Sequence record: KY555145.1
Direction: 5' to 3' (one strand)
Length of the DNA: 64,000 nucleotides
Made by a program: the position numbers and the translations under genes. The notes under the pieces were generated by a model. The model did no database searches. It was not told the origin of the DNA and saw only the letters and a program-made list of their open reading frames with translations. Below are positions 296 through 35,069 of the stretch, piece by piece (positions within the stretch are counted from its first letter, which is position 1; every line of letters starts with the position of its first letter).

Positions 296-341
296 TCGTT
301 GTGTCGACATAAGCTCTAGCCGTGGTTTTCCGGCCTGTCAA
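296..341 (-). promoter_or_regulatory. sigma70-type promoter with variant leader (CGACACAACG)
   Basis: Minus strand TTGACA-17-TAGAGC-6-CGACACAACG followed by AAGGAGG. Confidence 0.75.
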
Positions 342-360
342 CACACAACCGCCAAGGGTC

Positions 361-392
361 AAAAGAAAACCGCCGCCCCGAAGGACGGCGGT
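361..392 (-). terminator. rho-independent terminator
   Basis: Minus strand ACCGCCGTCC-TTCG-GGGCGGCGGT followed by TTTTCTTTT, just after the stop of 419..2542. Confidence 0.8.
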
Positions 393-418
393 CATGACAG
401 AGCATGTCAGGAGGGACG

Positions 419-2542
419 TCAGACGTCCAGAGCGAAGGCCGGCGGGGAGACGTCCGGCTTCTGAATGATGAACCCCCGATCCAAGAGGGGCGGGAAGACC
501 TGCTTGAGCACGCCGGCCGCGACCCCGGCTTCCTCGGCGATTTCGGCGAACGTGAAGGCCTCGCGCTGACCGGCGCTGGCGACAAACAGATCGTTGAGCG
601 CCAGGATCACCGCGCCCGCCGGACTGATCTCGTAGGCCATGTCGAAATTCGGGTCTTCCGACAGCCGCAGCAGGCCCTCGGCCTCCAGGTTCGCGATGAG
701 CGCCTTGAGTTGGTCGACCTTGACCGCGCCAAGATGGGTTTGGATTTCCCAGGGCGCCGCCGGCTCCTCGGCGCGCACGGCTTGCAGCGTCGCGATCAAG
801 GCGATCGCCGGCATGGCCCGCACGATCATCTCGTCGCCAACCGTCAGGTCCGGGGCGTTGACCAGCAGGTCATTGATCACCGCGTCGCCGTGGGTCTCGA
901 CATAGGTCCGCAGCCGCTTGAGGGCGACCAGGAAGTCGTCCTTGGTGATCGGCTCGATGCGGAAGGTCAGGAGCGGGTCGGTCGGAATCTCCGAGAAGTA
1001 GGCCCGACCCCGGTGGCTCCAGCCCTCGACCACATGCAGGAAGAGATCGATCGGCATGGCGACGGCGCCAAAGCCCAGTCGCGCATCGTCCGTCGCCTCC
1101 TCGACCTGCGCCAGGGCGTTATCGATCGCTTCGAGCGTGAAGCCCCCGACAAGGCCGTTTTCCGCCGCGTCCAGCACGTTGGCCGCTTCTTCGGTGCCGA
1201 GCCCCTCGACGACCATTTCCGAGGCCTCCTGAGCCGTTTCCTGCGGCAGGGCGTCGGCGAGCTTGCTCATCGCCTCGGCGACGCCGCTCGTGTCGAGTTC
1301 CAGCTTCAGGGCCAGCTTCTCGGGACGCGCCGAGTAGGGCACGCCCTGGATCACCACGGCGCCCAGGTCGCCGACGACGCGCTTGGTCACTTCCAGATAG
1401 GCGTAGCGCGAGGCGGCGTTGAGCAGCGACAGCCGTTCGAAGACGATCTGCTGCTCCTGCTCGCGCGACATGATGCCCGTCTCCAGGATAAACAGCGGCT
1501 CGGAGCCGTCCAGCGGCGGCTTGGCCTCGCCGTCGTCTTCCGGATGATCCTCGTCGAACTCGGCGCCGCTGATCGGCTCGCTCTCCGGCGGGATGAAGCG
1601 GATGCCCGGCTCGCGGGGCGGTTCGGCGGGAGTGGCGTCGTCAAGAGGCATGTCGGTCCTTTGAGGCTTGGAGGTGATGAAGAGCGTGGTGAGATCGACG
1701 TCCCAGACCCCAGACCCATCGGTGAAGAGCGCCATGAAGGTCCCCAGGCGCGCGTCCCAGCGGATGGTCTGGATCACGCCGTTGACGTCGCCATAGACGC
1801 CGGTCGCCCCCACGAGTTCATCGCGCAGGACCTCCGCATGGTCGTGGCACTCACCAAGCGTCGCCGGACGCACGGCGTGGAACGGGTATTGCTGATAGGC
1901 GCCCGGCGGCGAGACGAGGCGGACATTGACGTAGAGCGGCCCCAGATGGGTGTGGGCGTCGCGCAGGAAGCCGACCACGGTCTCCCCGTCGTTCTGGGTC
2001 GCCACCACAGGCATGCCGGCGCAGTTAGCGGTCAGGACCGCCGGATAGTCCTGGGGATAGGCCACGGCGTAAAGGTGGAGATGATCACCCCGGCGCTGGG
2101 CCTTCCAGTCGGCGACACACCAAGCCGCCACGCGCGTGGCCCCGAACTCCGGCGTCTCCTCGATCAAGACGCCGCCGTCCGGAAGGTCCGCTTGCCCAAT
2201 ATAAGGAACGACCTCGCTATGGCTGACGCTCCAGGCGGGCTTGGGAAATTGCGGGGTGATCATGAGCTTCTCGGTGAAGGTGAGATTGATGGCGTCGGCG
2301 TAGTGGACATACGGGCCGACCGGGGTAGTCCAGGGCGGATCGCCCTTGCGAATGTCCGACAGCGGCACCGCGACGTGCCTGCCGTTGGGCTGGACGATGT
2401 CGGCCAGGATGCGCGGCGGCTGGTGCATCAGGGTCACGACGTGCCCCTCGCCCGCCTCGAAGGTGCGACTCTTGGGCCACCAGACCTTGGACCCGGCCCA
2501 GTGGATCGACTGGATGACGAGGTCTTGTTCGGTCCCGATCAT
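419..2542 (-). CDS. 707-aa hypothetical protein with probable C-terminal tandem winged-helix domains
   Basis: Long ORF with phage-like codon use; C-terminal LIANLEAEGLLRL and FAEIAEEAGV...LLDRGFII resemble wHTH. Confidence 0.8.
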   Translation of the reverse strand: MIGTEQDLVIQSIHWAGSKVWWPKSRTFEAGEGHVVTLMHQPPRILADIVQPNGRHVAVPLSDIRKGDPPWTTPVGPYVHYADAINLTFTEKLMITPQFPKPAWSVSHSEVVPYIGQADLPDGGVLIEETPEFGATRVAAWCVADWKAQRRGDHLHLYAVAYPQDYPAVLTANCAGMPVVATQNDGETVVGFLRDAHTHLGPLYVNVRLVSPPGAYQQYPFHAVRPATLGECHDHAEVLRDELVGATGVYGDVNGVIQTIRWDARLGTFMALFTDGSGVWDVDLTTLFITSKPQRTDMPLDDATPAEPPREPGIRFIPPESEPISGAEFDEDHPEDDGEAKPPLDGSEPLFILETGIMSREQEQQIVFERLSLLNAASRYAYLEVTKRVVGDLGAVVIQGVPYSARPEKLALKLELDTSGVAEAMSKLADALPQETAQEASEMVVEGLGTEEAANVLDAAENGLVGGFTLEAIDNALAQVEEATDDARLGFGAVAMPIDLFLHVVEGWSHRGRAYFSEIPTDPLLTFRIEPITKDDFLVALKRLRTYVETHGDAVINDLLVNAPDLTVGDEMIVRAMPAIALIATLQAVRAEEPAAPWEIQTHLGAVKVDQLKALIANLEAEGLLRLSEDPNFDMAYEISPAGAVILALNDLFVASAGQREAFTFAEIAEEAGVAAGVLKQVFPPLLDRGFIIQKPDVSPPAFALDV

Positions 2543-2964
2543 GCGGACGCCGCCGCGCCGGCCGGCGTCAAGCCGTAGATGGTGGGGCCTCGCGGCGACT
2601 TGCCGAGCGCGACCACTTCCAGATAGCCCATATTATTCAAAGCCTTTGCCGTTTCATGATCGGGATGGTCGGTGAAGACGTTGAGCCGTCCGCCCTCGCC
2701 CATTGCCTGGGCGGCGCGCAGAAGGCTCGCCTCGGCTTCGGTCAAGGTGACCAGGGCGACATCCTCCAGCGCCACGTCGATCACGCAGGTCTGGCCCTGA
2801 TGAACGAACTCGATGATCGCCAGCCGGCGATAGGTCCCCGGCAGGACCGCAAGGCAGACGCCTCGGACCTCGACCTTCTGGCGGGCGGTGATCGGGAGAT
2901 AGAGGCTCGTCTTGACGGCCTTGCCCTTGAGGGACAGATGCTCGTGCGTCGCCAGCGGGATCAT
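2539..2964 (-). CDS. hypothetical protein with C-terminal winged-helix-like segment
   Basis: 4-nt overlaps with neighbours; TAKALNNMGYLEVV...YGLTPAG pattern. Confidence 0.75.
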   Translation of the reverse strand: MIPLATHEHLSLKGKAVKTSLYLPITARQKVEVRGVCLAVLPGTYRRLAIIEFVHQGQTCVIDVALEDVALVTLTEAEASLLRAAQAMGEGGRLNVFTDHPDHETAKALNNMGYLEVVALGKSPRGPTIYGLTPAGAAASA

Positions 2965-3206
2965 GGCTCGACCTTCCGGACAGTGTAGGAGAATTCGTCG
3001 TGGACGCGACCGTCGAAACTAGCCTCGTAGCCGGGGCCGAGTTCGGCCAGGATGCGCGCCTCGATCTCGGCGAAGTCGATTTTCGCCATCGCCTGTTCGG
3101 CCGCCCGCATCTGCTGGAGGAAGCCGTCCTTGATCTGGCGCCCCGCCTCGGTGCGGATCGGGATGTTCTGGATCGGCGGCTCGGATTTCGACAGACGCTC
3201 GCCCAT
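2961..3206 (-). CDS. 81-aa protein resembling the DNA polymerase I (family A) motif-A segment
   Basis: RLSKSEPPIQNIPIRTEAGRQIKDGF...IDFAEIEARILAEL versus Pol I [26 protein letters not shown]...ADYSQIELRIMAHL (recalled alignment). Confidence 0.7.
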   Translation of the reverse strand: MGERLSKSEPPIQNIPIRTEAGRQIKDGFLQQMRAAEQAMAKIDFAEIEARILAELGPGYEASFDGRVHDEFSYTVRKVEP

Positions 3207-3754
3207 CAGGCCCTCCGGCGATAGACCCGCACCGGGCGGGTGGGGAGGCGTTTCTCAGGCGGCTTGTAGGCGACCAGGGCATGGCTGATGCAGTAGACGC
3301 CTGCCTCGGCGCGGCATCCGCAATGGCCAAAGTCCGGCGAGTTCGGGTCGCCATAGGGCCAGCGGCACATTCCGCGCTTGAGTTCGGCCGTCGCGAACAG
3401 CCGCGCCGGGCGCGGCGGGATGACCGCCGTCCCTTCAGGGACCAGGGCGAGCTTAGGCTTGGCCGGCGGAGCGGGCTTTTCGACCTTCTTGGGCTTACGC
3501 GCCGTGGCCTTCTTGACCTTGCGGACCTGGATGCCCAGGCCGCGCGTCTTCTTGCGGCGGGCGGTCGGAGGCGGAACCTTCTCGCCCAGTTCGCCGGCGG
3601 CCTTCAGTCGGTCGGCCTTACCGCAGACGGCGCTCTTGGTGCGCGGCACGCTCAGGCGCTGACCGATCTCCTTGGTCCCGACCGGCTCCGCCCAGAGCTT
3701 CTTGAGCAGGGCGATATCCTCGTCCGGCCAGTCGGAATTCCGCTTCTTCACCAC
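3206..3754 (-). CDS. gcrA: GcrA-family cell-cycle regulator
   Basis: N-terminal WPDEDIALLKKLW...RTKSAVCGKADRL and C-terminal MCRWPYGDP...HCG...YCISHALVAY match GcrA hallmarks; AAGGAG RBS. Confidence 0.92.
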   Translation of the reverse strand: MVKKRNSDWPDEDIALLKKLWAEPVGTKEIGQRLSVPRTKSAVCGKADRLKAAGELGEKVPPPTARRKKTRGLGIQVRKVKKATARKPKKVEKPAPPAKPKLALVPEGTAVIPPRPARLFATAELKRGMCRWPYGDPNSPDFGHCGCRAEAGVYCISHALVAYKPPEKRLPTRPVRVYRRRA

Positions 3755-3761
3755 GCTTGCA

Positions 3762-3941
3762 CTACTCCTTGATCTCGACGCTCTTGGGCGGATTGGGATG
3801 AGGAACGAAGACCAGGGCCACGTCCTGACCGCCGGTATAGCGCGTGCGCCGACTGTAGAGCCAGCCGCCTTCCACCGCCAACCGCTCGGTCACCTGACCA
3901 TCGGCTTCGTCGATCTTTTCCCACTTGGACTTCTTAGCCAT
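3762..3941 (-). CDS. 59-aa hypothetical protein (MAKKSKWEKIDEADGQVTERLAVEGGWLYS...ALVFVP...)
   Basis: Hand-translated, below the ORF-track cutoff; GAGGGG RBS, ATG 3941, TAG 3762; similar to 12341..12637. Confidence 0.75.
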   Translation of the reverse strand: MAKKSKWEKIDEADGQVTERLAVEGGWLYSRRTRYTGGQDVALVFVPHPNPPKSVEIKE

Positions 3942-3962
3942 CTTCCCCTCGAATTTGGCGGC

Positions 3963-3991
3963 ACCCTAGAGGAGCGTTCGAGTGTTGACAA
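3963..3991 (-). promoter_or_regulatory. leftward sigma70-type promoter of the gcrA operon
   Basis: Minus strand TTGTCA-17-TAGGGT. Confidence 0.6.
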
Positions 3992-4017
3992 GCACCAATG
4001 TCGCTGGCTTTCGAGTG

Positions 4018-4062
4018 TTGACAAGTCCGGTGCTCGTCTATAGGGAGATCGGGACGACAACG
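4018..4062 (+). promoter_or_regulatory. sigma70-type promoter with GACGACAACG leader
   Basis: TTGACA-17-TAGGGA-6-GACGACAACG followed by AAAGGAG. Confidence 0.8.
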
Positions 4063-4075
4063 AAAGGAGCCCGCC

Positions 4076-4384
4076 ATGCGCTATGTGCTCGACTATGCCG
4101 ACGACCGGGACAAGCCGGTCTACACCGACTTCCAGGCCGGCGACCGCAAGGCGGCCATCGCCAAGGCCAAGCGCCTGCTCGCCAAGGCGATCAAGACCGT
4201 CGATTTCTCGCTCCATGGGGCCTACATCTTCGTCGATCCGACGGGCGTCGCCCGCGACGTCGACGACATGATCCCGTTCGGCATGCTGAGCACGATGGCC
4301 TACGCCAGCATCATCACCCCGTCGATGATCTCGTTCGACGACCGCGACGCCAAGGCGGCGATCGCCGCGAGGCTCGCCCAATGA
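4076..4384 (+). CDS. hypothetical protein
   Basis: ATG after AAAGGAG; 102 aa. Confidence 0.8.
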   Translation: MRYVLDYADDRDKPVYTDFQAGDRKAAIAKAKRLLAKAIKTVDFSLHGAYIFVDPTGVARDVDDMIPFGMLSTMAYASIITPSMISFDDRDAKAAIAARLAQ

Positions 4385-4593
4385 TGGATCGTCAGGACGT
4401 CAAGCCCGGCTTCATCTATCGCGGCGGCAAGAACGGTGCCCTTCGGCAGGTCGTGAGCTACGGCGCCACGCCTGACTACGTCTGCTGGGCCAATCCGCAT
4501 GATCGCTTGCCCTATGGCGGCTTCATGTCCACCACCTGCACCTCCAAGGCGTCCTTCGCCCGCTGGGCCGACAAGATCGAGGAAGAGGTCTGA
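4381..4593 (+). CDS. hypothetical protein (MMDRQDVK...), copy A
   Basis: ATGA overlap with upstream stop; duplicated at 5299. Confidence 0.8.
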   Translation: MMDRQDVKPGFIYRGGKNGALRQVVSYGATPDYVCWANPHDRLPYGGFMSTTCTSKASFARWADKIEEEV

Positions 4594-4865
4594 TGAACAC
4601 CTTTTTCCTCCGGCAGACCAAACGGGACGAGCAGGGCCGGCGCTACTTCGAGTTCGTCGATCCTGACCTGACCCAGCGCCTCTATGTCCGCAAGCCGCCG
4701 GACGACTGGTCCGAGGGCTTCCCGATCGTCCTGGAGGACTTCGTCGACGGCAAGCCCGCCGGCTCCATCATCTGCCCGGCCGGGAAGAAGCGGGGGCACG
4801 GCTTCGCGGCCTTCTTCAAGGCCAACCCCAAGGATTTCCGCAAGCTCAAGAAAGGTCGCCTATGA
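4593..4865 (+). CDS. hypothetical protein (MNTFFLRQ...), copy A
   Basis: TGATG overlap; identical protein at 5789. Confidence 0.8.
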   Translation: MNTFFLRQTKRDEQGRRYFEFVDPDLTQRLYVRKPPDDWSEGFPIVLEDFVDGKPAGSIICPAGKKRGHGFAAFFKANPKDFRKLKKGRL

Positions 4866-5128
4866 GGATTCCCCAGCCCGTCGAGTTCACCGTGGCCGAC
4901 CTCATCGCCCACCTTGCGACCCTGCCCCAGGACGCCAAGGTCGGCGTGCGCGGCGGGTTCGGGGGGTTCGGGGGCTTCCGGCCGCTCGACGAGATCGCCC
5001 CGATCGAACTCGTCACCTTCTACGGCGAGACCGACGTCGACCGCATGACGCTGGCGACCGCCGACCCCATCGCCATCAACTGGAAGGGCAAGCGCGGCGA
5101 GCCCTTCACGGCCATCATTCTCGACTAG
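4862..5128 (+). CDS. hypothetical protein (MRIPQPV...), copy A
   Basis: ATGA overlap; copy at 6058. Confidence 0.8.
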   Translation: MRIPQPVEFTVADLIAHLATLPQDAKVGVRGGFGGFGGFRPLDEIAPIELVTFYGETDVDRMTLATADPIAINWKGKRGEPFTAIILD

Positions 5129-5136
5129 GAGGACCC

Positions 5137-5298
5137 ATGACCAACCGTGTCTGGATTGAACTCGAACCGTCGCGACGTCGACGACATGATCCCGTTCGGC
5201 ATGCTGAGCACGATGGCCTACGCCAGCATCGTCACCCCGTCGATGATCTCGTTCGACGACCGCGACGCCAAGGCCGCGATCGCCGCGAGGCTCGCCCA
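5137..5298 (+). pseudogene. duplication junction: 12-codon 5' fragment of the 6324 gene joined to the 3' fragment of the 4076 gene
   Basis: MTNRVWIELEPS at 5137 is identical to the start of 6324; sequence from 5171 matches 4253 onward. Confidence 0.8.
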
Positions 5299-5511
5299 AT
5301 GATGGATCGTCAGGACATCCAGCCCGGCTTCATCTATCGCGGCGGCAAGAACGGAACCCTGCGTCAGATCGTGAGCTATGGGGCGACCGAGGATTTCGTC
5401 TGCTGGGCCAATCCCCACGACCGCCTGCCCTACGGCGGCTTCATCTCCACCATCTGCACGTCCAGGACGTCGTTCGCCCGCTGGGCCGACAAGATCGAGG
5501 AAGAGGTCTGA
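5299..5511 (+). CDS. hypothetical protein (MMDRQDIQ...), copy B
   Basis: 10 of 70 residues differ from 4381..4593. Confidence 0.8.
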   Translation: MMDRQDIQPGFIYRGGKNGTLRQIVSYGATEDFVCWANPHDRLPYGGFISTICTSRTSFARWADKIEEEV

Positions 5512-5792
5512 TGCTGTACAGCATGATCACGGGCGACTCTCCCGAAGACGAATTCGCCGACTATGAGTTCGCCAACGGGACCCAGGTCCACAATTCTCAA
5601 GCCGAGGACGATGGAACCTTCCGTCGCATGATCACCACGCCCAAGGGGATCAACGTCACCTTCTGGAACGTGATGCCCGTCGAGATCGTGGGCGAGGTCG
5701 CGGCCGAACTCGATCGGGTCGCGGCGGTCAACTTCGAGCAGGGCAAGCGTGCGAAGGCAGGTGAAATCATTCGCGTGTTGGGGCTCGGATGA
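5511..5792 (+). CDS. hypothetical protein present only in copy B
   Basis: TGATG and ATGA overlaps on both sides. Confidence 0.8.
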   Translation: MLYSMITGDSPEDEFADYEFANGTQVHNSQAEDDGTFRRMITTPKGINVTFWNVMPVEIVGEVAAELDRVAAVNFEQGKRAKAGEIIRVLGLG

Positions 5793-6061
5793 ACACCTTC
5801 TTCCTTCGGCAGACCAAACGGGACGAGCAGGGTCGACGCTACTTTGAGTTCGTCGATCCTGACCTGACCCAGCGCCTCTATGTCCGCAAGCCGCCGGACG
5901 ACTGGTCCGAGGGCTTCCCGATCGTCCTGGAGGACTTCGTCGATGGCAAGCCCGCCGGCTCCATCATCTGCCCGGCCGGGAAGAAGCGGGGGCATGGCTT
6001 CGCGGCCTTCTTCAAGGCCAACCCTAAGGATTTCCGCAAGCTCAAGAAAGGTCGCCTATGA
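5789..6061 (+). CDS. hypothetical protein (MNTFFLRQ...), copy B
   Basis: Duplicate of 4593..4865. Confidence 0.8.
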   Translation: MNTFFLRQTKRDEQGRRYFEFVDPDLTQRLYVRKPPDDWSEGFPIVLEDFVDGKPAGSIICPAGKKRGHGFAAFFKANPKDFRKLKKGRL

Positions 6062-6315: not shown

Positions 6316-6323
6316 GAGGACCC

Positions 6324-7193: not shown

Positions 7194-7194
7194 C

Positions 7195-7449
7195 ATGCTG
7201 ACCAAGGACGAGATCACCTTCGCGGGCCTGATCAAGGCCATGGAGGACGCCCGACGCACCGCCAAGGCGGCGGGCGATCTCGTCAGCACGGCCGAGATCG
7301 ACCGCTGGTTCAAGGAACACGCGCCGATCATCCGGGAGGTCCGCGACAAGGCCGAGGCCGACGAATTCGACGCTGGCGCGAGAGTGTTGACAACCTCTGA
7401 GGAAGGGACTAAAGACACCCTCGACGACAGCGAAAGGAGCCTGCCTTGA
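7195..7449 (+). CDS. hypothetical protein; C-terminus runs through the next promoter
   Basis: ORF track; packed in operon. Confidence 0.7.
   Translation: MLTKDEITFAGLIKAMEDARRTAKAAGDLVSTAEIDRWFKEHAPIIREVRDKAEADEFDAGARVLTTSEEGTKDTLDDSERSLP
7387..7432 (+). promoter_or_regulatory. sigma70-type promoter with CGACGACAGCG leader
   Basis: TTGACA-17-TAAAGA-6-CGACGACAGCG followed by AAAGGAG. Confidence 0.75.
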
Positions 7450-10003: not shown

Positions 10004-10004
10004 C

Positions 10005-10502: not shown

Positions 10503-10524
10503 GTCCTTTCCTGGCGCGAAAGTG

Positions 10525-10571
10525 TTGACAAGGCCCTCGGACCTCCTCTATACCCACGCTCGACGACAACG
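10525..10571 (+). promoter_or_regulatory. sigma70-type promoter with CGACGACAACG leader
   Basis: TTGACA-18-TATACC-6-CGACGACAACG followed by AGAGGAG. Confidence 0.8.
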
Positions 10572-10583
10572 AGAGGAGTTCCC

Positions 10584-14167: not shown

Positions 14168-14213
14168 TTGACAACACTCTCGCGCCAACATAGAACCGCC
14201 CTCGACGACAACG
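14168..14213 (+). promoter_or_regulatory. sigma70-type promoter with CGACGACAACG leader
   Basis: TTGACA-17-TAGAAC-6-CGACGACAACG followed by AGGAGG. Confidence 0.85.
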
Positions 14214-15683: not shown

Positions 15684-15730
15684 TTGACAAGGCCGGCGCC
15701 GCTGGCCTAGAACGTCGTGGACGACAACAG
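15684..15730 (+). promoter_or_regulatory. sigma70-type promoter with GACGACAACAG leader
   Basis: TTGACA-18-TAGAAC-6-GACGACAACAG followed by GAGG. Confidence 0.8.
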
Positions 15731-23038: not shown

Positions 23039-23084
23039 TTGACAGCCTCGGCGTGATGTCATAAAAGCCTCCTCGACGACAACG
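23039..23084 (+). promoter_or_regulatory. sigma70-type promoter with CGACGACAACG leader
   Basis: TTGACA-17-TAAAAG-6-CGACGACAACG followed by AGGAGG. Confidence 0.85.
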
Positions 23085-24441: not shown

Positions 24442-24487
24442 TTGCCAAAGCTGATCTGATCAGCTAGAACCCTCGCCGACGACAACG
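24442..24487 (+). promoter_or_regulatory. sigma70-type promoter with CGACGACAACG leader and palindromic spacer
   Basis: TTGCCA-17-TAGAAC-6-CGACGACAACG; AGCTGATC-T-GATCAGCT at 24449-24465. Confidence 0.75.
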
Positions 24488-25121: not shown

Positions 25122-25122
25122 C

Positions 25123-25440
25123 ATGGGCCTGCTGAGCATCTACCTGACCGGCGCGGCGCTCACCGGCGCGGCGACGGCCGTCTATCTCTTCAAGGTCCGG
25201 GCTCCGGCGACCAAGGAGACCTACACCACCACCTGGGGCTATGTCGAAACCGACGACGTCAATGAGACCGGCAACCACCTGGGGGCGATCCTCCTGATGG
25301 CGGTCCTCTGGTTCCTCACCGTCCCGCTCGCGATCGTCATGGGCCTCTGGCATCTCCTGGTCCGCGCCATCGACAAGGCTTGGCGCCGCTGCACGCCGCG
25401 CCGCGAGAAGACGCACGTTGGCACCCATCGCTATCTGTGA
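25123..25440 (+). CDS. membrane protein (2 TM)
   Basis: GGGAGG RBS; two hydrophobic segments. Confidence 0.75.
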   Translation: MGLLSIYLTGAALTGAATAVYLFKVRAPATKETYTTTWGYVETDDVNETGNHLGAILLMAVLWFLTVPLAIVMGLWHLLVRAIDKAWRRCTPRREKTHVGTHRYL

Positions 25441-25469
25441 TCGCCGCCAGCCCGGCTGGCTTCAGTGTG

Positions 25470-25498
25470 TTGACGGCGCGTCGATCGCCCGCTAAGAA
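25470..25498 (+). promoter_or_regulatory. sigma70-type promoter without the CGACGACAAC leader
   Basis: TTGACG-17-TAAGAA, preceded by hairpin GCCAGC-CCG-GCTGGC (25446-25460). Confidence 0.6.
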
Positions 25499-25556
25499 GG
25501 GCTGACGGTCACGCTCTGGCTGCATGAATTTTCAAGAGACAAAGGGCCTTAAGTCC

Positions 25557-27587: not shown

Positions 27588-27606
27588 CGGAAGGACCTGA
27601 AAGACC

Positions 27607-28029: not shown

Positions 28030-28055
28030 GCCTTCGGGCGGGCTGACATAGGCGC

Positions 28056-28101
28056 TTGACAACACTCTCGCGCCAACATAGAAGGGCCTCCGACGACAAC
28101 G
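28056..28101 (+). promoter_or_regulatory. sigma70-type promoter with CGACGACAACG leader
   Basis: TTGACA-17-TAGAAG-6-CGACGACAACG; core identical to 14168 and 30811. Confidence 0.85.
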
Positions 28102-28116
28102 CCGGAGGCCCTTTTC

Positions 28117-28347
28117 ATGCACTGCATGACCCCGATCAAGAAGCCCGTCACCGATCCCGAGTTCGGGATGTCGGTGAAGGATGTCGAACTGAACGGCCGC
28201 AAATACCGCGTCAGCCGCTCTGGTGAGGTTCGAGGCTACGTGCGGAACGCCCGCGTTCTGACCATCCAACACTGGGACCTTCGCCTGCTGCCGCTGACGG
28301 GTCCCACGGCGATCCGTGCGCGCGCCGCGTCGGGATGGTTCGAATGA
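28117..28347 (+). CDS. hypothetical protein
   Basis: GGAGG RBS. Confidence 0.7.
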   Translation: MHCMTPIKKPVTDPEFGMSVKDVELNGRKYRVSRSGEVRGYVRNARVLTIQHWDLRLLPLTGPTAIRARAASGWFE

Positions 28348-28574
28348 CCTACGCTGCACACCGCGACGAAATCAAGGCCTGGAACAAGGCCAATCCCAAA
28401 TTCTGGATGAACTACGACTACCTGACCGCGTCGGGTCGTCCGGCCAAGCGTCCGTTCATCCTCAACATCAAGATCGGCGGGGCTGAGCACCACCTGCACT
28501 TCGTCGCCCGCTACGCCTCGTTCGCCGGCGCCCAGAAGGCCGCCGCGAGCCTCGAAGCCGAGGTGGCTGCATGA
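28344..28574 (+). CDS. hypothetical protein (MTYAAH...)
   Basis: ATGA overlap. Confidence 0.7.
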   Translation: MTYAAHRDEIKAWNKANPKFWMNYDYLTASGRPAKRPFILNIKIGGAEHHLHFVARYASFAGAQKAAASLEAEVAA

Positions 28575-29023: not shown

Positions 29024-29024
29024 C

Positions 29025-29273: not shown

Positions 29274-30079
29274 GCGACTTCCAGCTTTCCGCCCAGCACC
29301 AGCGGATCGTCAACAACACGATCGACGCGCTGGACTATCTCTTTCGGCGCAATGGCGAGCCGTCCTCGGGCGGTGAGATGCCGTTCAACCGCCTCGATCT
29401 CGGGAGCATCGCCGACAACCTCTCGGCCGTCCTGGCGGTGCTCCCCAGCCACGCCGACATCCTGACGAAGTACCTCTTCATCGCCCAGGGGCTGCTTCGC
29501 GAGATCGCCAACTATCACGCGGCAAAGCCCGACGAACTGCGCCGGATGGCGCAGGCCCTGCGCCCCTTCTACAAAACCCGCGCCGCCGGCGGCCTGTCGC
29601 CCGCCGCCCAGCAGACCCTTGACTTCATGGTCGAGGGCCTTCGCTTCCTGGCTGAAAACGACTGCGAGCCCCCGTCGGGCGGCGAGCAGATGTACAACCG
29701 TATCTCGCTCCTGAGCCGCACCGGCTCGGACGCCAAGCGCCTGCGCCAGGAGGCGCCCAACCTCGACGTGGTGATCACCCAGGTCGAGGCCCTGTTCATC
29801 GACCTCTGGCACTATCGCGCCATCGCCATGAAGGACGTCAAGGACGCCTTGGAGGCCCTGGAGCCCTACTATGTTCCGCCCGCCTGGACGGTCACGCCGG
29901 CCCCCGCGCCGGCGGCGGCAAAGCCCGCCGCTCGCATCGTTTCGAAGGCCGAGGCCCTGGAACTGCTCGACCACATCGCGGTCACGGCCTCGACCCTGCG
30001 GATGCAGATGGGGCCGGCCAACGCCGACATCACGCTGGAGCGGGTCAAGACGCTCGAAGCCTTCGTCAATCAGCAATAG
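29270..30079 (+). CDS. hypothetical protein with internal domain duplication
   Basis: TTG after AAGGAGG; EPSSGGEMPFNR and EPPSGGEQMYNR repeats. Confidence 0.8.
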   Translation: MSDFQLSAQHQRIVNNTIDALDYLFRRNGEPSSGGEMPFNRLDLGSIADNLSAVLAVLPSHADILTKYLFIAQGLLREIANYHAAKPDELRRMAQALRPFYKTRAAGGLSPAAQQTLDFMVEGLRFLAENDCEPPSGGEQMYNRISLLSRTGSDAKRLRQEAPNLDVVITQVEALFIDLWHYRAIAMKDVKDALEALEPYYVPPAWTVTPAPAPAAAKPAARIVSKAEALELLDHIAVTASTLRMQMGPANADITLERVKTLEAFVNQQ

Positions 30080-30087
30080 AGGCCAGC

Positions 30088-30537
30088 ATGACCACTCCGC
30101 TCTGCCTGAACCCGGACGGTGCCGACTTCCAGGCCCAGGCCGTCCTCGCCCTGGTTCGCTTCGTCATTGGCGATGACTTCGAGCCATCCTGGAACGCCCA
30201 GAAGCAGGTCTTCGAGGGCGAGCCCCAGGTCGCCCACTTCGATAGCCCCCGCTGCCACGGCTACGTGATCTGGCTGGTCGATCGTCGCGCCCTGGCGCTC
30301 GGCGGCGAGGCCCGGCAGATCAACATCGTCTTCTACCAGCACGGGGTCAGCGACGAGATCGTCATCAACGCGTGGCTGGGCGAGACCAACCGCTGGATGG
30401 TCCCGACCTATCACGACATGCCCGACATCGAGAAGATGTTCAGGCGCGTCACCTTCCGCTGCCTGGACGTCAAGTCGGCCGCCTACTACGTCGCCGACCT
30501 GATGAAGGATTTCTGGGCCGAGGGCTCGCCGCGATGA
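30088..30537 (+). CDS. hypothetical protein
   Basis: AGAGG RBS. Confidence 0.75.
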   Translation: MTTPLCLNPDGADFQAQAVLALVRFVIGDDFEPSWNAQKQVFEGEPQVAHFDSPRCHGYVIWLVDRRALALGGEARQINIVFYQHGVSDEIVINAWLGETNRWMVPTYHDMPDIEKMFRRVTFRCLDVKSAAYYVADLMKDFWAEGSPR

Positions 30538-30836
30538 GCGACCACGACGCCTGCCTGACCAACTGGGTCCTCTGCGACGCGCCCGCCGGCGGGCTGGTGG
30601 TGATCGGCGAGATCATGGCCGACAAGCGCGGGCGCTGGCCGGACGGGCGGCTCATCCACACCTCGCTCCTCCGGGTCAAGGCCGAGGCGGTGGCGCCGGG
30701 CGCGGTGGTCGCCACGCTCAACTCCCGCTACATCCTGGGGCGCAAGGCCGAGGAGATCACCGTCCGTCACTTCGTCGGGGCGATGCTCGCCCGCGTCGCG
30801 ATCAGACCGCTTGACAACACTCTCGCGCCAACATAG
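30534..30836 (+). CDS. hypothetical protein (MSDHDAC...)
   Basis: ATGA overlap; DKRGRWPDGRLIHTS...TLNSRYILG. Confidence 0.75.
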   Translation: MSDHDACLTNWVLCDAPAGGLVVIGEIMADKRGRWPDGRLIHTSLLRVKAEAVAPGAVVATLNSRYILGRKAEEITVRHFVGAMLARVAIRPLDNTLAPT

Positions 30837-30888
30837 AAGGGTCCTCGACGACAACGGCTGTCCGAAATTTGTAGACGGATTTCGGACA
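30811..30888 (+). promoter_or_regulatory. sigma70-type promoter with CGACGACAACG leader followed by a 10-bp hairpin
   Basis: TTGACA-17-TAGAAG-6-CGACGACAACG; TGTCCGAAAT-N10-ATTTCGGACA at 30859-30888. Confidence 0.8.
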
Positions 30889-30903
30889 TAGAGGAGCACC
30901 CCG

Positions 30904-31287
30904 ATGGCCCAGCGCCTGAAGATCAAGGAAGTCGTGGTGGCGCAGCAGGACGCTGTCTACCACTGGCGTGGCGAGGAAGGCGACGAGTATCAGGTCATGA
31001 GCCTCGTCCACGTCCAGACCCTGGACGGCCGCTGGTTCCTGATGCCGGCCATGCGCCCCTACACCCGCGCCGAGGAGGCCGCGTTCGACGAGGCCTGCGG
31101 CGAAATCCTGTTCGGGATGAAGACCCGCTACTCGGACCCGCAGGCCTTCGCCGCCATCGTTCGCGCCGCCGGCTCGATCGATCCTGATCTGTGGGTCGAG
31201 TATCAGCCCGACACCCGCACCCTGGAAGAGAAGTTCCACGACGACTGGGTCGAGGAACAGTTCGACCGCCAACGCTTCGCCGCCTGA
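30904..31287 (+). CDS. hypothetical protein
   Basis: AGAGGAG RBS. Confidence 0.8.
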   Translation: MAQRLKIKEVVVAQQDAVYHWRGEEGDEYQVMSLVHVQTLDGRWFLMPAMRPYTRAEEAAFDEACGEILFGMKTRYSDPQAFAAIVRAAGSIDPDLWVEYQPDTRTLEEKFHDDWVEEQFDRQRFAA

Positions 31288-31298
31288 GGAGGACCCCG

Positions 31299-31766
31299 AT
31301 GAGCTACCAACAAGCCATGATGGACGCCCAGGTGGAGTTCCACGCCCGCGAGATGGACGTCAGCGACCGCGCCTGGGAGCGCTTCGTCAAGAAGCTGGAG
31401 GACGTCCTGGGCTTCGACATCGACGCCGACAACTCCGAGGAGGCCAAGGCCTTCTACTGCGACATGGGCTACTCGCTCGACGAGACCTTCGAGATGTTCG
31501 ACAAGGGCATGAGCGTCGAGCAGGCCCGCGTCGCCATCCTGCGCGGCGCCTATGAGGCCGCCGCCCGCGCCGCCGGCGTGGGCCTGGACGCCCTGGTCGA
31601 GGCCAAGAAGCGCGCCGTCGCCACCCGTGACGCCCTGCCCGAAAAGCGCAAGGTGGACCGCGAGCAGTACGCCCGCTACGCCGAACTGCTGGGCAAGATG
31701 ATCGCCCGCATCCGCGAGGTCGGTGACGACTCGGGCGCGGCGCTTGAGAAGGCGTTCGGCCAATGA
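31299..31766 (+). CDS. hypothetical protein (MSYQQA...)
   Basis: GAGGAGG RBS. Confidence 0.8.
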   Translation: MSYQQAMMDAQVEFHAREMDVSDRAWERFVKKLEDVLGFDIDADNSEEAKAFYCDMGYSLDETFEMFDKGMSVEQARVAILRGAYEAAARAAGVGLDALVEAKKRAVATRDALPEKRKVDREQYARYAELLGKMIARIREVGDDSGAALEKAFGQ

Positions 31767-31990
31767 GCGGCGGTCTCCACATGCGCCGGATCGATCACCC
31801 GCCGGGCCATGAGCTTCATGGCGTCACCGAGCGCGAGTTCGAGTGGTTCGGCAAGTCCTACCACGTGCGCAAAGAATCTGGCGCCGTGCGGGTCTGGGTC
31901 CGCAAGAAGCGTGGAAGCCACTACCGGTTCCTGTCGCGCGACAGCGTGATCGCCGCCTGCGTCCGCCAAGCCTCGGGGCTGTTCCAATGA
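31763..31990 (+). CDS. basic hypothetical protein
   Basis: ATGA overlap. Confidence 0.7.
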   Translation: MSGGLHMRRIDHPPGHELHGVTEREFEWFGKSYHVRKESGAVRVWVRKKRGSHYRFLSRDSVIAACVRQASGLFQ

Positions 31991-32379
31991 GCCGCCCGTC
32001 GATCGCGGTGGTCGCCGCCACGCCCGCCCTGACGCCCATGCACTGGGAGATCGTCGACCTCAAGGTCTGCGACGACAGCCGGGTCAAGCTGAACGGCGAT
32101 GGGACGATGTTCGCCCGCGCCGCCGACCCGACGGCGCTGGGCTGGATTCCGTTCAAGATCGTTCTGGGCTGCTTTGAGACCTTCGCCGACGCCTACGAGG
32201 CCCGCCACAAGGCCCGGTCGCTCTGGTTCAAAGCGGCCGAAACGGTCGACGCCGCCGCCGAGGCGGTGGTCGCCGCCGAACAGGCCCTAGCGCGCGCCCG
32301 CGCCGTTCAAGCCCAAGCCGAAAGCGCCCAGCGCGCGTCCTGTCGCGAGCCGTTCCTCGGCACGCCCACCGACTACTAG
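31987..32379 (+). CDS. hypothetical protein (MSRPSI...)
   Basis: ATGA overlap. Confidence 0.7.
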   Translation: MSRPSIAVVAATPALTPMHWEIVDLKVCDDSRVKLNGDGTMFARAADPTALGWIPFKIVLGCFETFADAYEARHKARSLWFKAAETVDAAAEAVVAAEQALARARAVQAQAESAQRASCREPFLGTPTDY

Positions 32380-32387
32380 GAGGTCCC

Positions 32388-32765
32388 ATGCGCAAGCCCA
32401 AGAAGACCGAGCAGGCCTATATCGTGTCGGGGACGTGGCCGTTTCCAACCGACATGCTGCGCTATGACGACGCCCGCCCGGCGACCGAGGGCGACGCCAA
32501 CCTGATCAAGGCCCTGGAGAGCGAGGACCCCTCACTTTCGGACCTGCGCAATCGCGTCCAGATCAAGCTGATCCGCCCGGCCAACGGCCTGCCCGCCGTC
32601 AAGCGCTGGGAGTCCTTCCTCTGGAAGGTCGTGGGCGGCGACGAGGAGGTCGCGGCGGACGTGGCGTGGCGCGACGCCCTGGATAACCGCGACGCCCTGC
32701 GCAAGTCCGGCCTCGCCAAGCTGACCCCCGCCGAGCGCGCCGCGCTCAATCTCGACATCCGCTAG
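32388..32765 (+). CDS. conserved phage hypothetical protein (FPTDMLRYD motif)
   Basis: AGGAGG RBS. Confidence 0.8.
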   Translation: MRKPKKTEQAYIVSGTWPFPTDMLRYDDARPATEGDANLIKALESEDPSLSDLRNRVQIKLIRPANGLPAVKRWESFLWKVVGGDEEVAADVAWRDALDNRDALRKSGLAKLTPAERAALNLDIR

Positions 32766-32779
32766 GACAAGGAGGCCCC

Positions 32780-33265
32780 ATGCCCTGCAATTCCGAATAC
32801 CAACAGCCCAACCAGCGCGAAGCCGAGTCCAAGAAGGTCGCCGGCCTGCTGGTCTACGTCCACAACAAGCTGGGCCGCACCGATCTGCCGCGCAGCGTCG
32901 AGTTGGCCGCCACCACCTACTATGGCGCGCCCGAACGCTGCGATGAACTGACCGAGCGCCTCTGCTCGATGCTGCGCGATCTGACGGTCGACGAGCAGAA
33001 CGCGGTCCTCTACGACGGCCGCATCCCCAAGGCCCGCGAACTGGCCGACTGGTGGGAGCGCCACCAGGAGCATGACCGCCAGCGCGCCGAGGCCGAAGCC
33101 CGCGCCGCCAAGCCGACCCTGAAGCAAGCCGTCTCCTCGGTGATCGCCCAACTCGACTATTCGGCCAACGCCAAGGTGTTCCCGACCGAGGGCGGCGAAG
33201 CCCTGCCGCCGAAGCTGGCCCAGGCGCTGAACGAGATGACCGACGCCTGGAACGACGGTCGTTGA
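32780..33265 (+). CDS. hypothetical protein (MPC...WWERHQEHD)
   Basis: AAGGAGG RBS. Confidence 0.8.
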   Translation: MPCNSEYQQPNQREAESKKVAGLLVYVHNKLGRTDLPRSVELAATTYYGAPERCDELTERLCSMLRDLTVDEQNAVLYDGRIPKARELADWWERHQEHDRQRAEAEARAAKPTLKQAVSSVIAQLDYSANAKVFPTEGGEALPPKLAQALNEMTDAWNDGR

Positions 33266-33282
33266 TCGTTGGCTCCGATGTG

Positions 33283-33330
33283 TTGACAAGAAGCGGCGGC
33301 CTCCTGTAGAAGCTCTCTCGACGACAACAG
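33283..33330 (+). promoter_or_regulatory. sigma70-type promoter with CGACGACAACAG leader
   Basis: TTGACA-18-TAGAAG-6-CGACGACAACAG followed by GAGG. Confidence 0.85.
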
Positions 33331-33341
33331 GAGGCCCCGCC

Positions 33342-33836
33342 TTGACCAGCCAGATCGTAGCCGGAACCCAGTTCGAAGACGCCGTCACCCTCGGCGTCGA
33401 GATCATCCAGACCAAGCCGGCGCACCTGACCGCCGGTGAAGCGGTCGAGAAGTTCCAGCACCAGCCGGATGAGTTCCGTGAACTGGTGACCCGCTTCAAC
33501 AAGGCGACCGCCGCCCTGCCGGCGGTGGTCAATGGCCACCAGAGGCAATCGACCTGCGCCCAGTGGGTGCTCGACGCGAGCCAGCGGCTCATCGACCTGC
33601 CGTTCGAGACGATCGAGCAGCGCGTGGAATTCTACGCCAAGCAGATGGCGATCCCAGCCTACGGCTATCTGATGGATCGCTACAAGGACCGGCTCGACGC
33701 CAAGATCGCCATCGTCCGGGCCTGCCTGGAAGACCGCAACCACATCGGGGCCAGCTACAACCTGAAGGGCCTGGAGGAGGACTTCCAGGAGATGGTTGAC
33801 CGCCACGACGACCTCGTGTCGGACGGCTATCCGTAA
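33342..33836 (+). CDS. hypothetical protein
   Basis: TTG after AGGAGG. Confidence 0.75.
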   Translation: MTSQIVAGTQFEDAVTLGVEIIQTKPAHLTAGEAVEKFQHQPDEFRELVTRFNKATAALPAVVNGHQRQSTCAQWVLDASQRLIDLPFETIEQRVEFYAKQMAIPAYGYLMDRYKDRLDAKIAIVRACLEDRNHIGASYNLKGLEEDFQEMVDRHDDLVSDGYP

Positions 33837-33847
33837 GGAGACTCGAC

Positions 33848-34204
33848 ATGCCCAAGCCCATCCCCCAAGGCCGTTATGGCATCGCCGGTTTCACCGGCTG
33901 GTCGCCCCAGCACTTCAAGGTCGTCGATCTCAACACCACCGTCCATGAAGAGGACGAGGACGACGAGAACTGGTACGCCCTGGACCTGGATGGCGAGCCG
34001 TTCAGTTATGGCGTGATCAAAGCGCGCTTCGCCACCGCCGAGGACGCGCAGGCCAACCTCTTGGCGGCGCAGGCCGCCTACGCCGAGCAAGACAAGATCG
34101 TCAAGGGTCTTCAGGCTGCCTACGAGGATGTCAAGCGCAAGCTCGAACTGGCCGTCTCCAAGCGCGGGCTGGAATACCGCAAAGCCATGATGGGCGAGGC
34201 TTGA
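33848..34204 (+). CDS. hypothetical protein with C-terminal coiled coil
   Basis: TAAGGAG RBS. Confidence 0.8.
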   Translation: MPKPIPQGRYGIAGFTGWSPQHFKVVDLNTTVHEEDEDDENWYALDLDGEPFSYGVIKARFATAEDAQANLLAAQAAYAEQDKIVKGLQAAYEDVKRKLELAVSKRGLEYRKAMMGEA

Positions 34205-34214
34205 AAAACCCCCA

Positions 34215-34243
34215 TTGCAGTCCAGCCGGGTCCAGCTTAGCTT
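34215..34243 (+). promoter_or_regulatory. candidate promoter for the 34280-35051 cassette
   Basis: TTGCAG-17-TAGCTT; spacer holds TCCAGC twice; no CGACGACAAC leader. Confidence 0.45.
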
Positions 34244-34279
34244 CGGCGCGCCGCGCTGTTGCGGCCGTGAGGATTCGGT

Positions 34280-34540
34280 ATGGACAGGCTCAAAGTCAAA
34301 CTCTTCGCCAAGGGGATTCAGACCTCGGCGGAAGCGCTGGTCGATGCGATCGCGACGCTCCCCGACGGTCCGGAGAAGGACGCGGTGGTCGCGGCCGAAC
34401 AGCAGCTTCATGCCCGCCTCAACTGGGGCGCGGCGAAGGCCGGCGAGTTCTTCGGGGACGAATCGATCTCGCTCCTGGCGCGCCGTCGCACCGGCGGCGA
34501 AGACAAGCCGGACGCTCCGGAAGTTCCGCCCGGCGGCTGA
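34280..34540 (+). CDS. 86-aa helical protein with C-terminal RRRTGGEDKP tail
   Basis: GAGGA RBS. Confidence 0.75.
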   Translation: MDRLKVKLFAKGIQTSAEALVDAIATLPDGPEKDAVVAAEQQLHARLNWGAAKAGEFFGDESISLLARRRTGGEDKPDAPEVPPGG

Positions 34541-34550
34541 CGGGTGCGTC

Positions 34551-35051
34551 ATGGGTCTGACGGGCTGCGCCTTCGCGGCCCTGACGACCGGCTCGGTCGC
34601 CTACGCGATCGACCGTGGCGGCAAGGCGCTGAAGCTCAGCGCCTTCCTGCTGCTGGCGTCCTGGGTGTTCTCGGTCACCCTGGGCCAGACCCTGCACGCG
34701 GGCATGAAGCCCTATGTCTATGCCTGGGTCGACGCCCTGTTCGCCGGCGCGATGGGGATATTGATCTCCGCCCGGCTCCAGCGCTGGCGGGTCGCCCTCT
34801 TCACCCTGGCGATCGCCCAGATGGGCCTCCACCTGATCATGATCGGGGGCTGGGATTTCTCGCTGCACGCGCGGCGCCTCCACGTCCTGGCCCTCAACCT
34901 GACCTACGGCCTGGAACTCTTCGTCCTGACGATCGGGGCGGCGACCTATCGCGTCGAGGTCGAGGACGACATGCCGGCGCTGATCGAGACTGACGGCCCC
35001 GGACCCGGCTGGCTTGAATGTGTTGACAAAGCCAGAGAGCCCGTCCTATAA
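34551..35051 (+). CDS. polytopic membrane protein (4-5 TM)
   Basis: Successive hydrophobic segments; ATG 10 nt after the upstream stop. Confidence 0.75.
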   Translation: MGLTGCAFAALTTGSVAYAIDRGGKALKLSAFLLLASWVFSVTLGQTLHAGMKPYVYAWVDALFAGAMGILISARLQRWRVALFTLAIAQMGLHLIMIGGWDFSLHARRLHVLALNLTYGLELFVLTIGAATYRVEVEDDMPALIETDGPGPGWLECVDKAREPVL

Positions 35052-35069
35052 GCTCCCTCGACGACAACG
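35023..35069 (+). promoter_or_regulatory. sigma70-type promoter with CGACGACAACG leader
   Basis: TTGACA-18-TATAAG-6-CGACGACAACG followed by AGGAGG. Confidence 0.85.

Follow-up and report, generated by a model that had tools for sequence, protein, structure and literature searches.

A conserved start-region element of early promoters in phiCbK-like phages and a candidate small RNA complementary to it

In phiCbK-like phages, CGACGACAAC was shown to form the start-site-proximal part (predicted +1 to about +9) of early promoters of the host RpoD type. It can be proposed, with slightly better than even confidence, that this element is a 5' tag that would enable one phage small RNA to pair with all early leaders, probably leading to their shut-off. 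The proposal draws on the position and conservation of the element in the promoters and on a candidate RNA locus whose seed co-varies with the leaders in several phage lineages.

A shared element at the predicted transcription start

The window (the whole stretch of DNA that was analysed, 64,000 nucleotides) corresponds to positions 165320-229319 of the genome of Caulobacter phage Ccr29, a phiCbK-like phage. GACGACARC is present 12 times in the window, always on the + strand, compared to 1.79 +/- 1.35 copies in shuffled sequences, none of 100 shuffles reaching 12. Eleven of these copies (4053, 7423, 10562, 14204, 15720, 23075, 24478, 28092, 30847, 33320 and 35060) are located 34-37 nt 3' of the first T of TTGACA or TTGCCA, downstream of a TAnAnn -10, in short gaps ahead of gene clusters. 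The twelfth copy (32071) is intragenic and without a promoter, and was set aside as a chance match. The copy counts against shuffles and the positions confirmed the claim of an earlier note on this DNA that an element is shared by twelve promoters, eleven of them rightward and one, degenerate, leftward, as well as its observations that the leftward copy is one G short and that the promoters at 25470, 41709, 43532 and 45434 are devoid of the element. The twelve promoters are the following:

298..341, - strand: degenerate leftward early promoter; TTGACA 341-336, TAGAGC, 6 nt, CGACACAAC 306-298, Shine-Dalgarno (SD), GTG of gp231 at 281
4018..4061, + strand: early promoter; -35 at 4018, GACGACAAC 4053-4061, SD, ATG 4076
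7387..7431, + strand: early promoter; variant GACGACAGC 7423-7431, within the 3' end of gp249 as annotated, ahead of gp250
10525..10570, + strand: early promoter; element 10562-10570, upstream of gp256
14168..14212, + strand: early promoter of the conserved-spacer subclass; element 14204-14212
15684..15728, + strand: early promoter; element 15720-15728
23039..23083, + strand: early promoter; element 23075-23083, between the arms of a 9-bp inverted repeat, GCCTCCTCG / CGAGGAGGC
24442..24486, + strand: early promoter with -35 TTGCCA; element 24478-24486
28056..28116, + strand: early promoter plus terminator-shaped hairpin; stem 28081-28111 with the element (28092-28100) as the loop, TTTT, ATG 28117
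30811..30855, + strand: early promoter; element 30847-30855, SD 45 nt further, behind a separate hairpin
33283..33328, + strand: early promoter; element 33320-33328
35023..35068, + strand: early promoter; element 35060-35068

The leftward promoter drives an operon containing a tgrL-like XRE gene; tgrL is an early gene, and 41% of the genes are early (PMC10688885). The genes downstream of the early promoters are nearly all hypothetical. The inverted repeat around the element at 23075-23083 would leave the SD hidden in read-through RNA, and the phiCbK orthologue of the hairpin at 28056 is an annotated rho-independent terminator. At 30811 the distance of 45 nt between element and SD indicates that the element tracks the promoter and not the SD.

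Features of promoters dependent on the host RpoD (sigma73/sigma70) are present, with TTGACA at -35 and a -10 located about 17 nt downstream, which supports the claim that these phage promoters are of the host-sigma type. They are made up of TTGACA or TTGCCA, a spacer of 15-18 nt, which in the twelve promoters listed measures 17-18 nt, and a TAnAnn -10, mostly TAGAAG/C. The -10 consensus of Caulobacter, as Malakooti is said to have reported in 1995, is GCTANAWC, and the phage -10s fit this consensus; as they do not have the T found at -7 in Escherichia coli, a scan with an E. coli-type consensus detects none of these promoters. In the Caulobacter host, 93% of the RpoD motifs have their beginning 34-37 bp ahead of a mapped start site (PMC4287350). 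The first G of the element is located 34-38 nt from TTGACA, so that by the host spacing the element is the expected transcription start, and we infer that transcription would begin at this G or adjoining it. The claim of an mRNA class with one 5' end stands as a prediction from the host spacing, with a common start of 9 nt: as the element is found at the predicted start of about 22 early units, the early messages are predicted to share their first 9 nt.

The element, (C)GACGACAAC, was found 5-8 nt past the -10, hence near the 6 nt given in the earlier note but not constantly at this distance, and usually 0-4 nt ahead of a strong SD. It holds about 1.6-2.6 bits per position, equalling the -35 and exceeding the -10, and purines make up about 81% of the first 16 nt, among which there is no T. 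That the spacers vary while the element is fixed proved right for most promoters, but those at 14168, 28056 and 30811 have one common spacer.

The twelve promoters initially listed belong to a larger class that extends outside that range and the window, comprising about 22 copies on both strands at 118-200 kb of the genome, with further copies at genome positions 118731, 129637, 137837, 144763, 146811, 150112, 153227, 155122, 156571, 159786, 161298. Throughout the class the offset from the -35 is always 34-38 nt, and internal ribosome sites are without the element. The element is conserved in Rogue, BL10 and Karma, and variants are present in CcrColossus (TGACGATCA) and, as a GACGAC core, in the Brevundimonas phages Bajun and Domovoi. 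A scan of IMG/VR for promoter plus element produced mostly chance single matches, the multi-copy contigs being those of Karma, Rogue and BL10 only, and these were again obtained in an IMG/VR search with the seed pattern (see below). In the full-text literature no description of the 9-mer, of phiCbK promoters or of phiCbK small RNAs was found. Ccr29 also has a second promoter class that uses TTGACA.

A candidate small RNA complementary to the early leaders

A candidate RNA locus is located outside the window, between the tRNA array and phoH (Ccr29 genome ~57328-57462; phiCbK NC_019405.1 ~52921-53055). It consists of an early-type promoter without the element (promoter-like; CTGGC..GTGTTGACA, 17 nt, TAAAAC), a hairpin at the 5' end, then an unpaired stretch and finally an intrinsic terminator, which the terminator rule of the E. 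coli-type scan misses. The Ccr29 seed, CUUCUG-CGUUGUCGUC-AG, corresponds to the reverse complement of element and SD region together, imperfect in the anti-SD half, which contains G-U pairs and one mismatch. The unique Ccr29 genome holds a single exact antisense copy of the element, which is placed in a non-coding gap within this promoter-hairpin-seed-terminator unit. The locus was found in 26 records, in none of which (0/26) a CDS is annotated there, while the terminator was annotated by the depositors; it overlaps mechanical ORFs only, and a conserved reading frame is incompatible with its indels of 1-4 nt.

For the 97-nt RNA a fold with z = -5.67 was obtained in which GUUGUCGUCA is unpaired; the minimum-energy structure, the centroid and the consensus all have an unpaired seed. 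Across Shapirovirus and Poindextervirus the aligned seed block does not vary, unlike its flanks, and TCGTCA is the sole invariant block in a five-lineage alignment. Rfam 15 gave no match in the window and, at the small RNA loci, only ar14, with 19-21 bits against a threshold of 58.8, by which membership in this family was rejected; the alphaproteobacterial anti-SD RNAs of ar14 (RF02344) and the phage RNA have in common an unpaired anti-SD stretch of the CCUCC type and a terminator hairpin. In CcrSC no anti-leader RNA was found in the syntenic gap.

Seed and leader co-vary in four lineages, at the same syntenic place throughout. In Colossus and CcrPW the leaders are TGACGATCA..GGAGGCC and the seed is GGCCUCC-UGAUCGUCA; in Bajun, GACGAC..GGAGACC and GGUCUCC..GUCGUC; and in Domovoi, GACGAC..GGAGGACC and GGUCCUCC-GUCGUCA, respectively. 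Cognate duplexes had energies of -25.5, -24.0 and -24.3 kcal/mol, non-cognate ones of -18.7 to -21.4 and shuffled seeds of about -11 +/- 2, the cognate duplex being the strongest in every row and column of the lineage comparison. A bulge of 3-7 nt often interrupts the pairing between the two blocks in Bajun, Domovoi and Colossus. In a ranking of 224 SD-led gene starts of Ccr29, places 1-7, 9, 10 and 12-14 are occupied by the group of 15 first genes behind early promoters, whose mean pairing energy was -28.6 versus -16.1 (p = 7e-10). As antisense 9-mers are expected by chance about 0.7 times per genome, it is synteny and the co-variation in only four or five lineages that carry the case. The match between seed and leader could also be maintained by gene conversion of the leaders with an inverted leader relic.

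The earlier note had suggested a tag read by a phage protein or a site for coordinated shut-off. A common tag that permits coordinated control fits best, but a phage small RNA complementary to the element and the SD is a likelier reader than a protein. A trans-acting phage RNA of about 100 nt would target the early leaders, with the anti-SD half of the seed competing with the ribosome and the anti-element half conferring specificity, so that binding would be limited to first genes behind early promoters. The likeliest outcome would be joint translational repression of the early messages, their decay, or both, and hence early shut-off. In addition, at several promoters a CCTCC just 5' of the start pairs with the SD, by which upstream read-through RNA may be terminated or silenced in cis. 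Time-course RNA-seq is publicly available. The promoter of the candidate RNA belongs to the same early class as its predicted targets, which leaves the timing of any shut-off unexplained.

Alternative readings of the element

The locking of the element to the -10 and -35 and the purine-rich, T-free composition of the first 16 nt would also be compatible with a start region that acts in cis only, fixing the start, speeding escape from near-consensus promoters and keeping the leader before the SD short and unstructured, with no trans factor and with the small RNA being irrelevant. The early promoters of T5, in which the transcribed start region is common as well, offer a precedent for this explanation. 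It also agrees with data from E. coli, in which productive yield correlates with purine content, slow escapers have 2-3 T among their initial 7 nt and changes in the initial transcribed sequence shift promoter strength >10-fold (PMC5961368). Likewise, T5 early promoters (N25) have conserved, purine-rich first transcribed bases that affect output (PMC12464699, PMC5961368; Kammerer 1986 as cited there), an effect on promoter escape in cis for which no trans-acting reader is known. Initial-sequence effects are, however, compositional and degenerate, while here an exact 9-mer outdoes the -10 in conservation and includes two C-G steps, a type of step that has been associated with initial pausing (PMC5961368). 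As a cis-only function also does not explain the co-varying complementary seed, it is considered unlikely.

Alternatively, the element could be a DNA operator at +1 to +10 through which a phage or host protein switches all early promoters together, either off or on. Its conservation matches that of the -35, repressor sites typically cover +1, the existence of a second TTGACA class calls for a class-specific signal outside the -35, and the drop of early transcripts after 15 min (PMC10688885) is in line with such control; yet the element is non-palindromic and, besides TgrL, no candidate binder was identified, which makes an operator rather improbable. TgrL, an early XRE repressor, was rejected as the reader, since the matrix of TgrL/CdxA/RtrA (XRE; CAA[C/G][C/T], 4 nt, weak second half-site; ChIP-seq, PMC10688885 S2 Table) and the element have only CAAC in common and the element scores poorly. 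In a genome scan none of the top 40 matches was near an early promoter (0/40), and the best local matches were off the element.

About 8 of 21 copies fold a hairpin across the start, with a summed energy of -199 versus -132 +/- 9 for shuffled upstream halves (a structure excess of ~7 sd), and such hairpins were annotated as terminators by the depositors. Moreover, an identical 40-bp cassette is present at two loci in opposite orientation, three promoters have one spacer in common and one Ccr29-specific insertion begins exactly at a cassette. These observations would suit a functionless element that travels as part of a mobile promoter-terminator cassette, which recombination would spread and homogenise, as with the PeSLs of T4-type phages. 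The cassettes seen here and the PeSLs both have repeated strong host-sigma early promoters and stem-loops in regions of small orphan genes, one PeSL subclass having the stem-loop immediately upstream of the start site (PMC2839356, PMC4122927), and a strong early promoter plus stem-loop upstream of orphan genes was found here. In contrast, PeSLs are without a reported conserved transcribed tag or cognate antisense RNA, and cassette recombination is weakly seen in these phages, with one of six indel breakpoints relative to phiCbK (28120) adjoining a cassette. Across phages of 60-79% identity and other genera the 9-mer is unchanged while spacers and flanks diverged, which indicates selection on the element itself, and there is little to recommend a functionless passenger.

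In a further reading, GACAAC in the element would be a -10-like sequence (cf. TAGAAC) causing a sigma-dependent promoter-proximal pause for factor loading as in lambda Q. In its favour, 4 of 5 informative positions agree with the phage's own -10 consensus and the conserved spacer subclass could be a factor-binding site; against it, no gene resembling Q was recognised, Q systems are unlike a set of about 22 promoters and the Colossus variant GATCAA is a poorer -10 fit. This reading is very hard to credit. NAD-cap, Hfq ARN-motif, LexA, SciP and boxA were dropped because the sequence did not fit them.

Known systems and significance

The c4 antisense RNA of P1/P7, which hides a ribosome site, and the CI RNA of P4, which causes early termination, are small phage RNAs whose targets in trans are short complementary leader sites of the same phage. 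Both participate in temperate-element immunity and derive by processing from the operon that they target; their target sites number one or two. The likeness to these RNAs is in the proposed pairing of a small phage RNA in trans with its own leaders; here, in contrast, the phage is virulent, the RNA has a separate gene, about 22 dispersed targets are predicted at mRNA 5' ends and the sequences are unrelated. The T4 endoribonuclease RegB inactivates many early phage mRNAs through GGAG, a short ribosome-site signal, and a joint inactivation of early mRNAs via a common short ribosome-site signal is likewise proposed here. RegB, however, is a protein nuclease with a 4-nt signal, whereas the proposed RNA would read about 16-22 nt.

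In a wider sense, and with an even chance of being right, a virulent phage would tag every early unit with one leader and encode a single anti-leader RNA reading tag and ribosome site, so that one RNA may control a whole temporal class post-transcriptionally and the pair may co-evolve across the Dolichocephalovirinae of Caulobacter and Brevundimonas. Two promoter classes are defined for this phage group, even should the RNA link fail. If the link is true, it would explain why the start region outdoes the -10 in conservation and give a function to an unannotated locus of the classic model phage phiCbK, and the 9-nt tag with its cognate RNA would be a tool to switch gene sets in Caulobacter. The temporal switches of large virulent phages are usually ascribed to proteins, which either remodel RNA polymerase or cleave RNA; were a conserved RNA to read a shared 5' tag, the shut-off of a whole class would follow another, simple logic.

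An element fixed to the predicted start of early promoters

The window is 100% identical to positions 165320-229319 of Caulobacter phage Ccr29 (KY555145.1, Shapirovirus, phiCbK-like; genome coordinate = window coordinate + 165319). Its GC content is ~66%, and positions 1-46000 are occupied nearly entirely by small hypothetical genes, with leftward transcription to ~3950 and rightward transcription beyond. The motif GACGACARC occurs 12 times in the window, on the + strand only, compared to 1.79 +/- 1.35 in shuffled sequences (0/100 shuffles reached 12), and 11 of the 12 copies lie downstream of a TTGACA-type -35 separated by 15-18 nt from a TAnAnn -10. Most of these promoter-linked copies are followed, 0-4 nt past the element, by a GGAGG-type ribosome site and a start codon. 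The copy at 32071 was set aside as a chance match inside a gene. An earlier note had claimed that twelve promoters share this element at the predicted start, perhaps as a regulatory tag; the association was borne out by the 11 rightward copies with -35/-10 and by the enrichment over shuffles, the four promoters named as element-less (25470, 41709, 43532, and 45434) did lack it on checking, and the leftward copy was found as described:

341-298, - strand: leftward early promoter, carrying CGACACAAC, one G short

A scan with an E. coli-type consensus detected none of these early promoters, since their -10 ends in G or C and not in T; this -10 agrees with the Caulobacter RpoD consensus.

When the remaining Ccr29 genome was also scanned, 20 exact copies of the element, GACGACAAC, were counted in the unique sequence, for 17 of which a TTGACA begins 34-38 nt upstream. 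The class comprises ~22 members once one- or two-base variants are included, confined to genome 118-200 kb and placed on the transcribed strand, whichever that is. No copy in the Ccr29 genome was located at an internal ribosome site, and at 30847 the Shine-Dalgarno (SD) is 45 nt away, showing that the element tracks the promoter rather than its ribosome site. In the Caulobacter host, 93% of RpoD motifs begin 34-37 bp 5' of mapped start sites (PMC4287350), which places the predicted start at the element's first G or adjoining it. The class is termed early because its leftward member is predicted to drive an operon with a tgrL-like XRE gene, and tgrL is early and highly expressed in phiCbK, where 41% of the phage genes were early (PMC10688885).

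The promoters at 14168, 28056, and 30811 have one common -35/-10 spacer (ACACTCTCGCGCCAACA), which is kept nearly unaltered in Rogue, BL10, and Karma and may be an extra binding site within the promoter. At 25430-25530, upstream of the 677-aa gp290, a promoter has the early-class upstream part (TGGC..GTGTTGACG, TAAGAA) and only a degenerate element (GACGGTCAC). The annotated ORFs gp249 (7195-7449) and gp308 (34551-35051) overlap the early promoters 7387 and 35023; either these promoters lie within coding sequence or the ORF ends were over-called.

Conservation of the element and its possible roles in cis

The exact 9-mer is present in many copies each in Karma, Rogue, and BL10, with diverged spacers. 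Brevundimonas phage Bajun shows equal architecture, including an upstream TTGGCG..GTG, and looser elements (e.g., GACGACAAC, AACGACGCAAC), and CcrColossus carries the variant TGACGATCA, preceded by TTGACG, 17 nt, and TACAAG. A GACGA core is common to all phages compared. In an alignment on the element, the element columns hold 1.6-2.6 bits, on a par with the -35 and above the -10. In a 278,859-bp metagenomic jumbo-phage contig (IMGVR_UViG_3300001199_000001; no nucleotide matches in the phage collection), the - strand at ~179-224 reads GTGTTGACA, 17 nt, TATTCT, 8 nt, GACGACAAC-AAC-GGAGG-ATG, a predicted promoter and tag equal in design to the Ccr29 early promoters.

The location at the predicted start is consistent with a purely cis-acting start region, a reading that we consider rather unlikely in view of the complementary locus described below. 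That the element is an operator for a protein is distinctly unlikely. As a candidate reader, the early phage repressor TgrL was rejected: its ChIP-seq matrix (PMC10688885, supplement), scanned over the genome, has CAAC alone in common with the element, and none of its 40 best genome matches is near an early promoter.

The element is often flanked directly by CCTC(C) on the 5' side and by GAGG(AGG) on the 3' side, so that the -10-to-SD stretch can fold as a hairpin with the element as the loop. The summed hairpin energy of 21 sites was -199 kcal/mol vs -132 +/- 9 when the upstream half alone was shuffled, an excess due to ~8 of the 21 sites. Window 28056 and genome 137873 have canonical terminators with a T run, and the orthologous hairpins in phiCbK and Colossus carry the depositors' annotation as rho-independent terminators. 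An RNA initiated at the element would have no left hairpin arm, and folding would be limited to read-through RNA. In the stretch 28081-28570, a terminator-shaped hairpin lies over the promoter's start. A 450-bp insertion specific to Ccr29 (gp292-gp293; vs phiCbK) starts exactly at the ATG past this cassette, and the same 40-bp cassette recurs inverted at genome 137873. One of the six indels relative to phiCbK adjoins a cassette, thin evidence for cassette-mediated recombination, and it is very improbable that the element hitch-hikes in a cassette. A sigma-dependent pause signal is scarcely credible.

A complementary locus for a proposed small RNA

The sole exact copy antisense to local transcription in the unique Ccr29 genome is at genome 57407, in a non-coding gap that runs from the last tRNA to the gene before phoH. 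Here an element-less promoter of the early type (CTGGC..GTGTTGACA, 17 nt, TAAAAC) is followed by ~97 nt that end in a strong hairpin with a U-rich tail. The proposed small RNA is predicted to fold (z = -5.67) into a stem-loop at the 5' end and a terminator stem of 16 bp, with GUUGUCGUCA left unpaired. The locus was found in 26 phage records, with the terminator annotated in several and a CDS in 0/26, and matched no Rfam family. A five-phage alignment revealed an invariant block, GAGCYTCTG-CGTTGTCGTCAG-RAACGGCCCG, together with a variable promoter spacer and 5' hairpin, in which GGACC/GGTCC is swapped for GGGGCC/GGCCCC; no reading frame survives the indels of 1-4 nt. The unpaired segment (seed) is predicted to pair with GACGACAAC and also, via CUUCUG or CCUCUG, with GAGGAGG 3' of it.

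The order tRNA-gap-phoH is conserved in other genera, and the syntenic seed agrees with the leader of its own lineage in each lineage tabulated, a co-variation case that rests on four or five lineages.

Early leaders and syntenic seeds by lineage
Colossus (and CcrPW, 97.7% identity): leader TGACGATCA..GGAGGCC; seed GGCCUCC-UGAUCGUCA
Bajun: leader GACGAC..GGAGACC; seed GGUCUCC..GUCGUC
Domovoi (Brevundimonas jumbo phage): leader GACGAC..GGAGGACC; seed GGUCCUCC-GUCGUCA

The sole small RNA block invariant over five lineages is TCGTCA in the seed. In the CcrSC gap after the tRNA array (NC_048048.2 89235-89463) an anti-leader RNA was not evident; a terminator hairpin was the sole feature there besides a GAATCTTGACA-type promoter. 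Cognate duplexes reached -25.5, -24.0, and -24.3 kcal/mol, all non-cognate ones were weaker (-18.7 to -21.4), and shuffled seeds gave ~ -11 +/- 2 kcal/mol. Among 224 SD-led Ccr29 starts, the first genes behind early promoters held ranks 1-7, 9, 10, and 12-14 in seed pairing (p = 7e-10), and one top-scoring start outside the class was a variant early promoter. A genome-wide sliding scan placed early leaders among the top matches, but GC-rich chance duplexes score alike.

Altogether, a conserved start element locked to the promoter is accompanied by a non-coding locus that is itself conserved and structured; its unpaired part has complementarity to the early leader and varies in step with it. 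On balance, this complementarity suggests that the locus would be transcribed and that its RNA would pair with the leaders, repressing early genes. The imperfect anti-SD half in Ccr29, the bulged duplexes in some lineages, the CcrSC gap with no counterpart seen, and the comparison of only four or five lineages weaken this reading; nor does the early-type promoter of the small RNA explain when the proposed repression would set in.

A second promoter class and known systems

A second class of promoters, represented by ~19 copies of GTCGTGAATCTTGACA, lacks the element:

Window 45467-45477, + strand, and ~18 copies in genome 22-121 kb: second promoter class, (t)GTCGTGAATCTTGACA

In these promoters a GANTC site, the methylation site of CcrM, lies directly against the -35. 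They have a TAnnTT-type -10, and GTTAACCA, similar to a CtrA half-site, is often found 15-45 nt 3'. Structural, lysis, and replication genes lie 3' of them, and the class is a candidate target of the phage GcrA homolog encoded at window 3206-3754 (-). Terminal redundancy repeats (GGCGGGATTGCCCGGCGGC .. TAGAGG .. TTAAC-N7-TTAAC) with CtrA boxes occur at window ~54665, 55260, 56455, 59955, and 62597 (-); CtrA sites in these repeats were previously described (PMC9437464).

No description of the element or the small RNA was found in the searchable literature. Functionally closest to the proposed small RNA are two phage RNAs, c4 of P1/P7 and CI of P4, which work in trans on short sites within leaders of the same phage. 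A functional parallel to the proposed class-wide control is offered by T4 RegB: a common signal at the ribosome site lets it inactivate many early mRNAs. The anatomy of the early-promoter cassette is like that of PeSLs, promoter-terminator cassettes found in T4-type phages (PMC2839356). The proposed arrangement, in which a virulent phage marks ~22 units with a 5'-terminal tag and separately encodes a cognate RNA, has no equal among these systems. The readings of the element set out above are compatible; the same bases could fix where transcription starts, help escape, and act as a tag.
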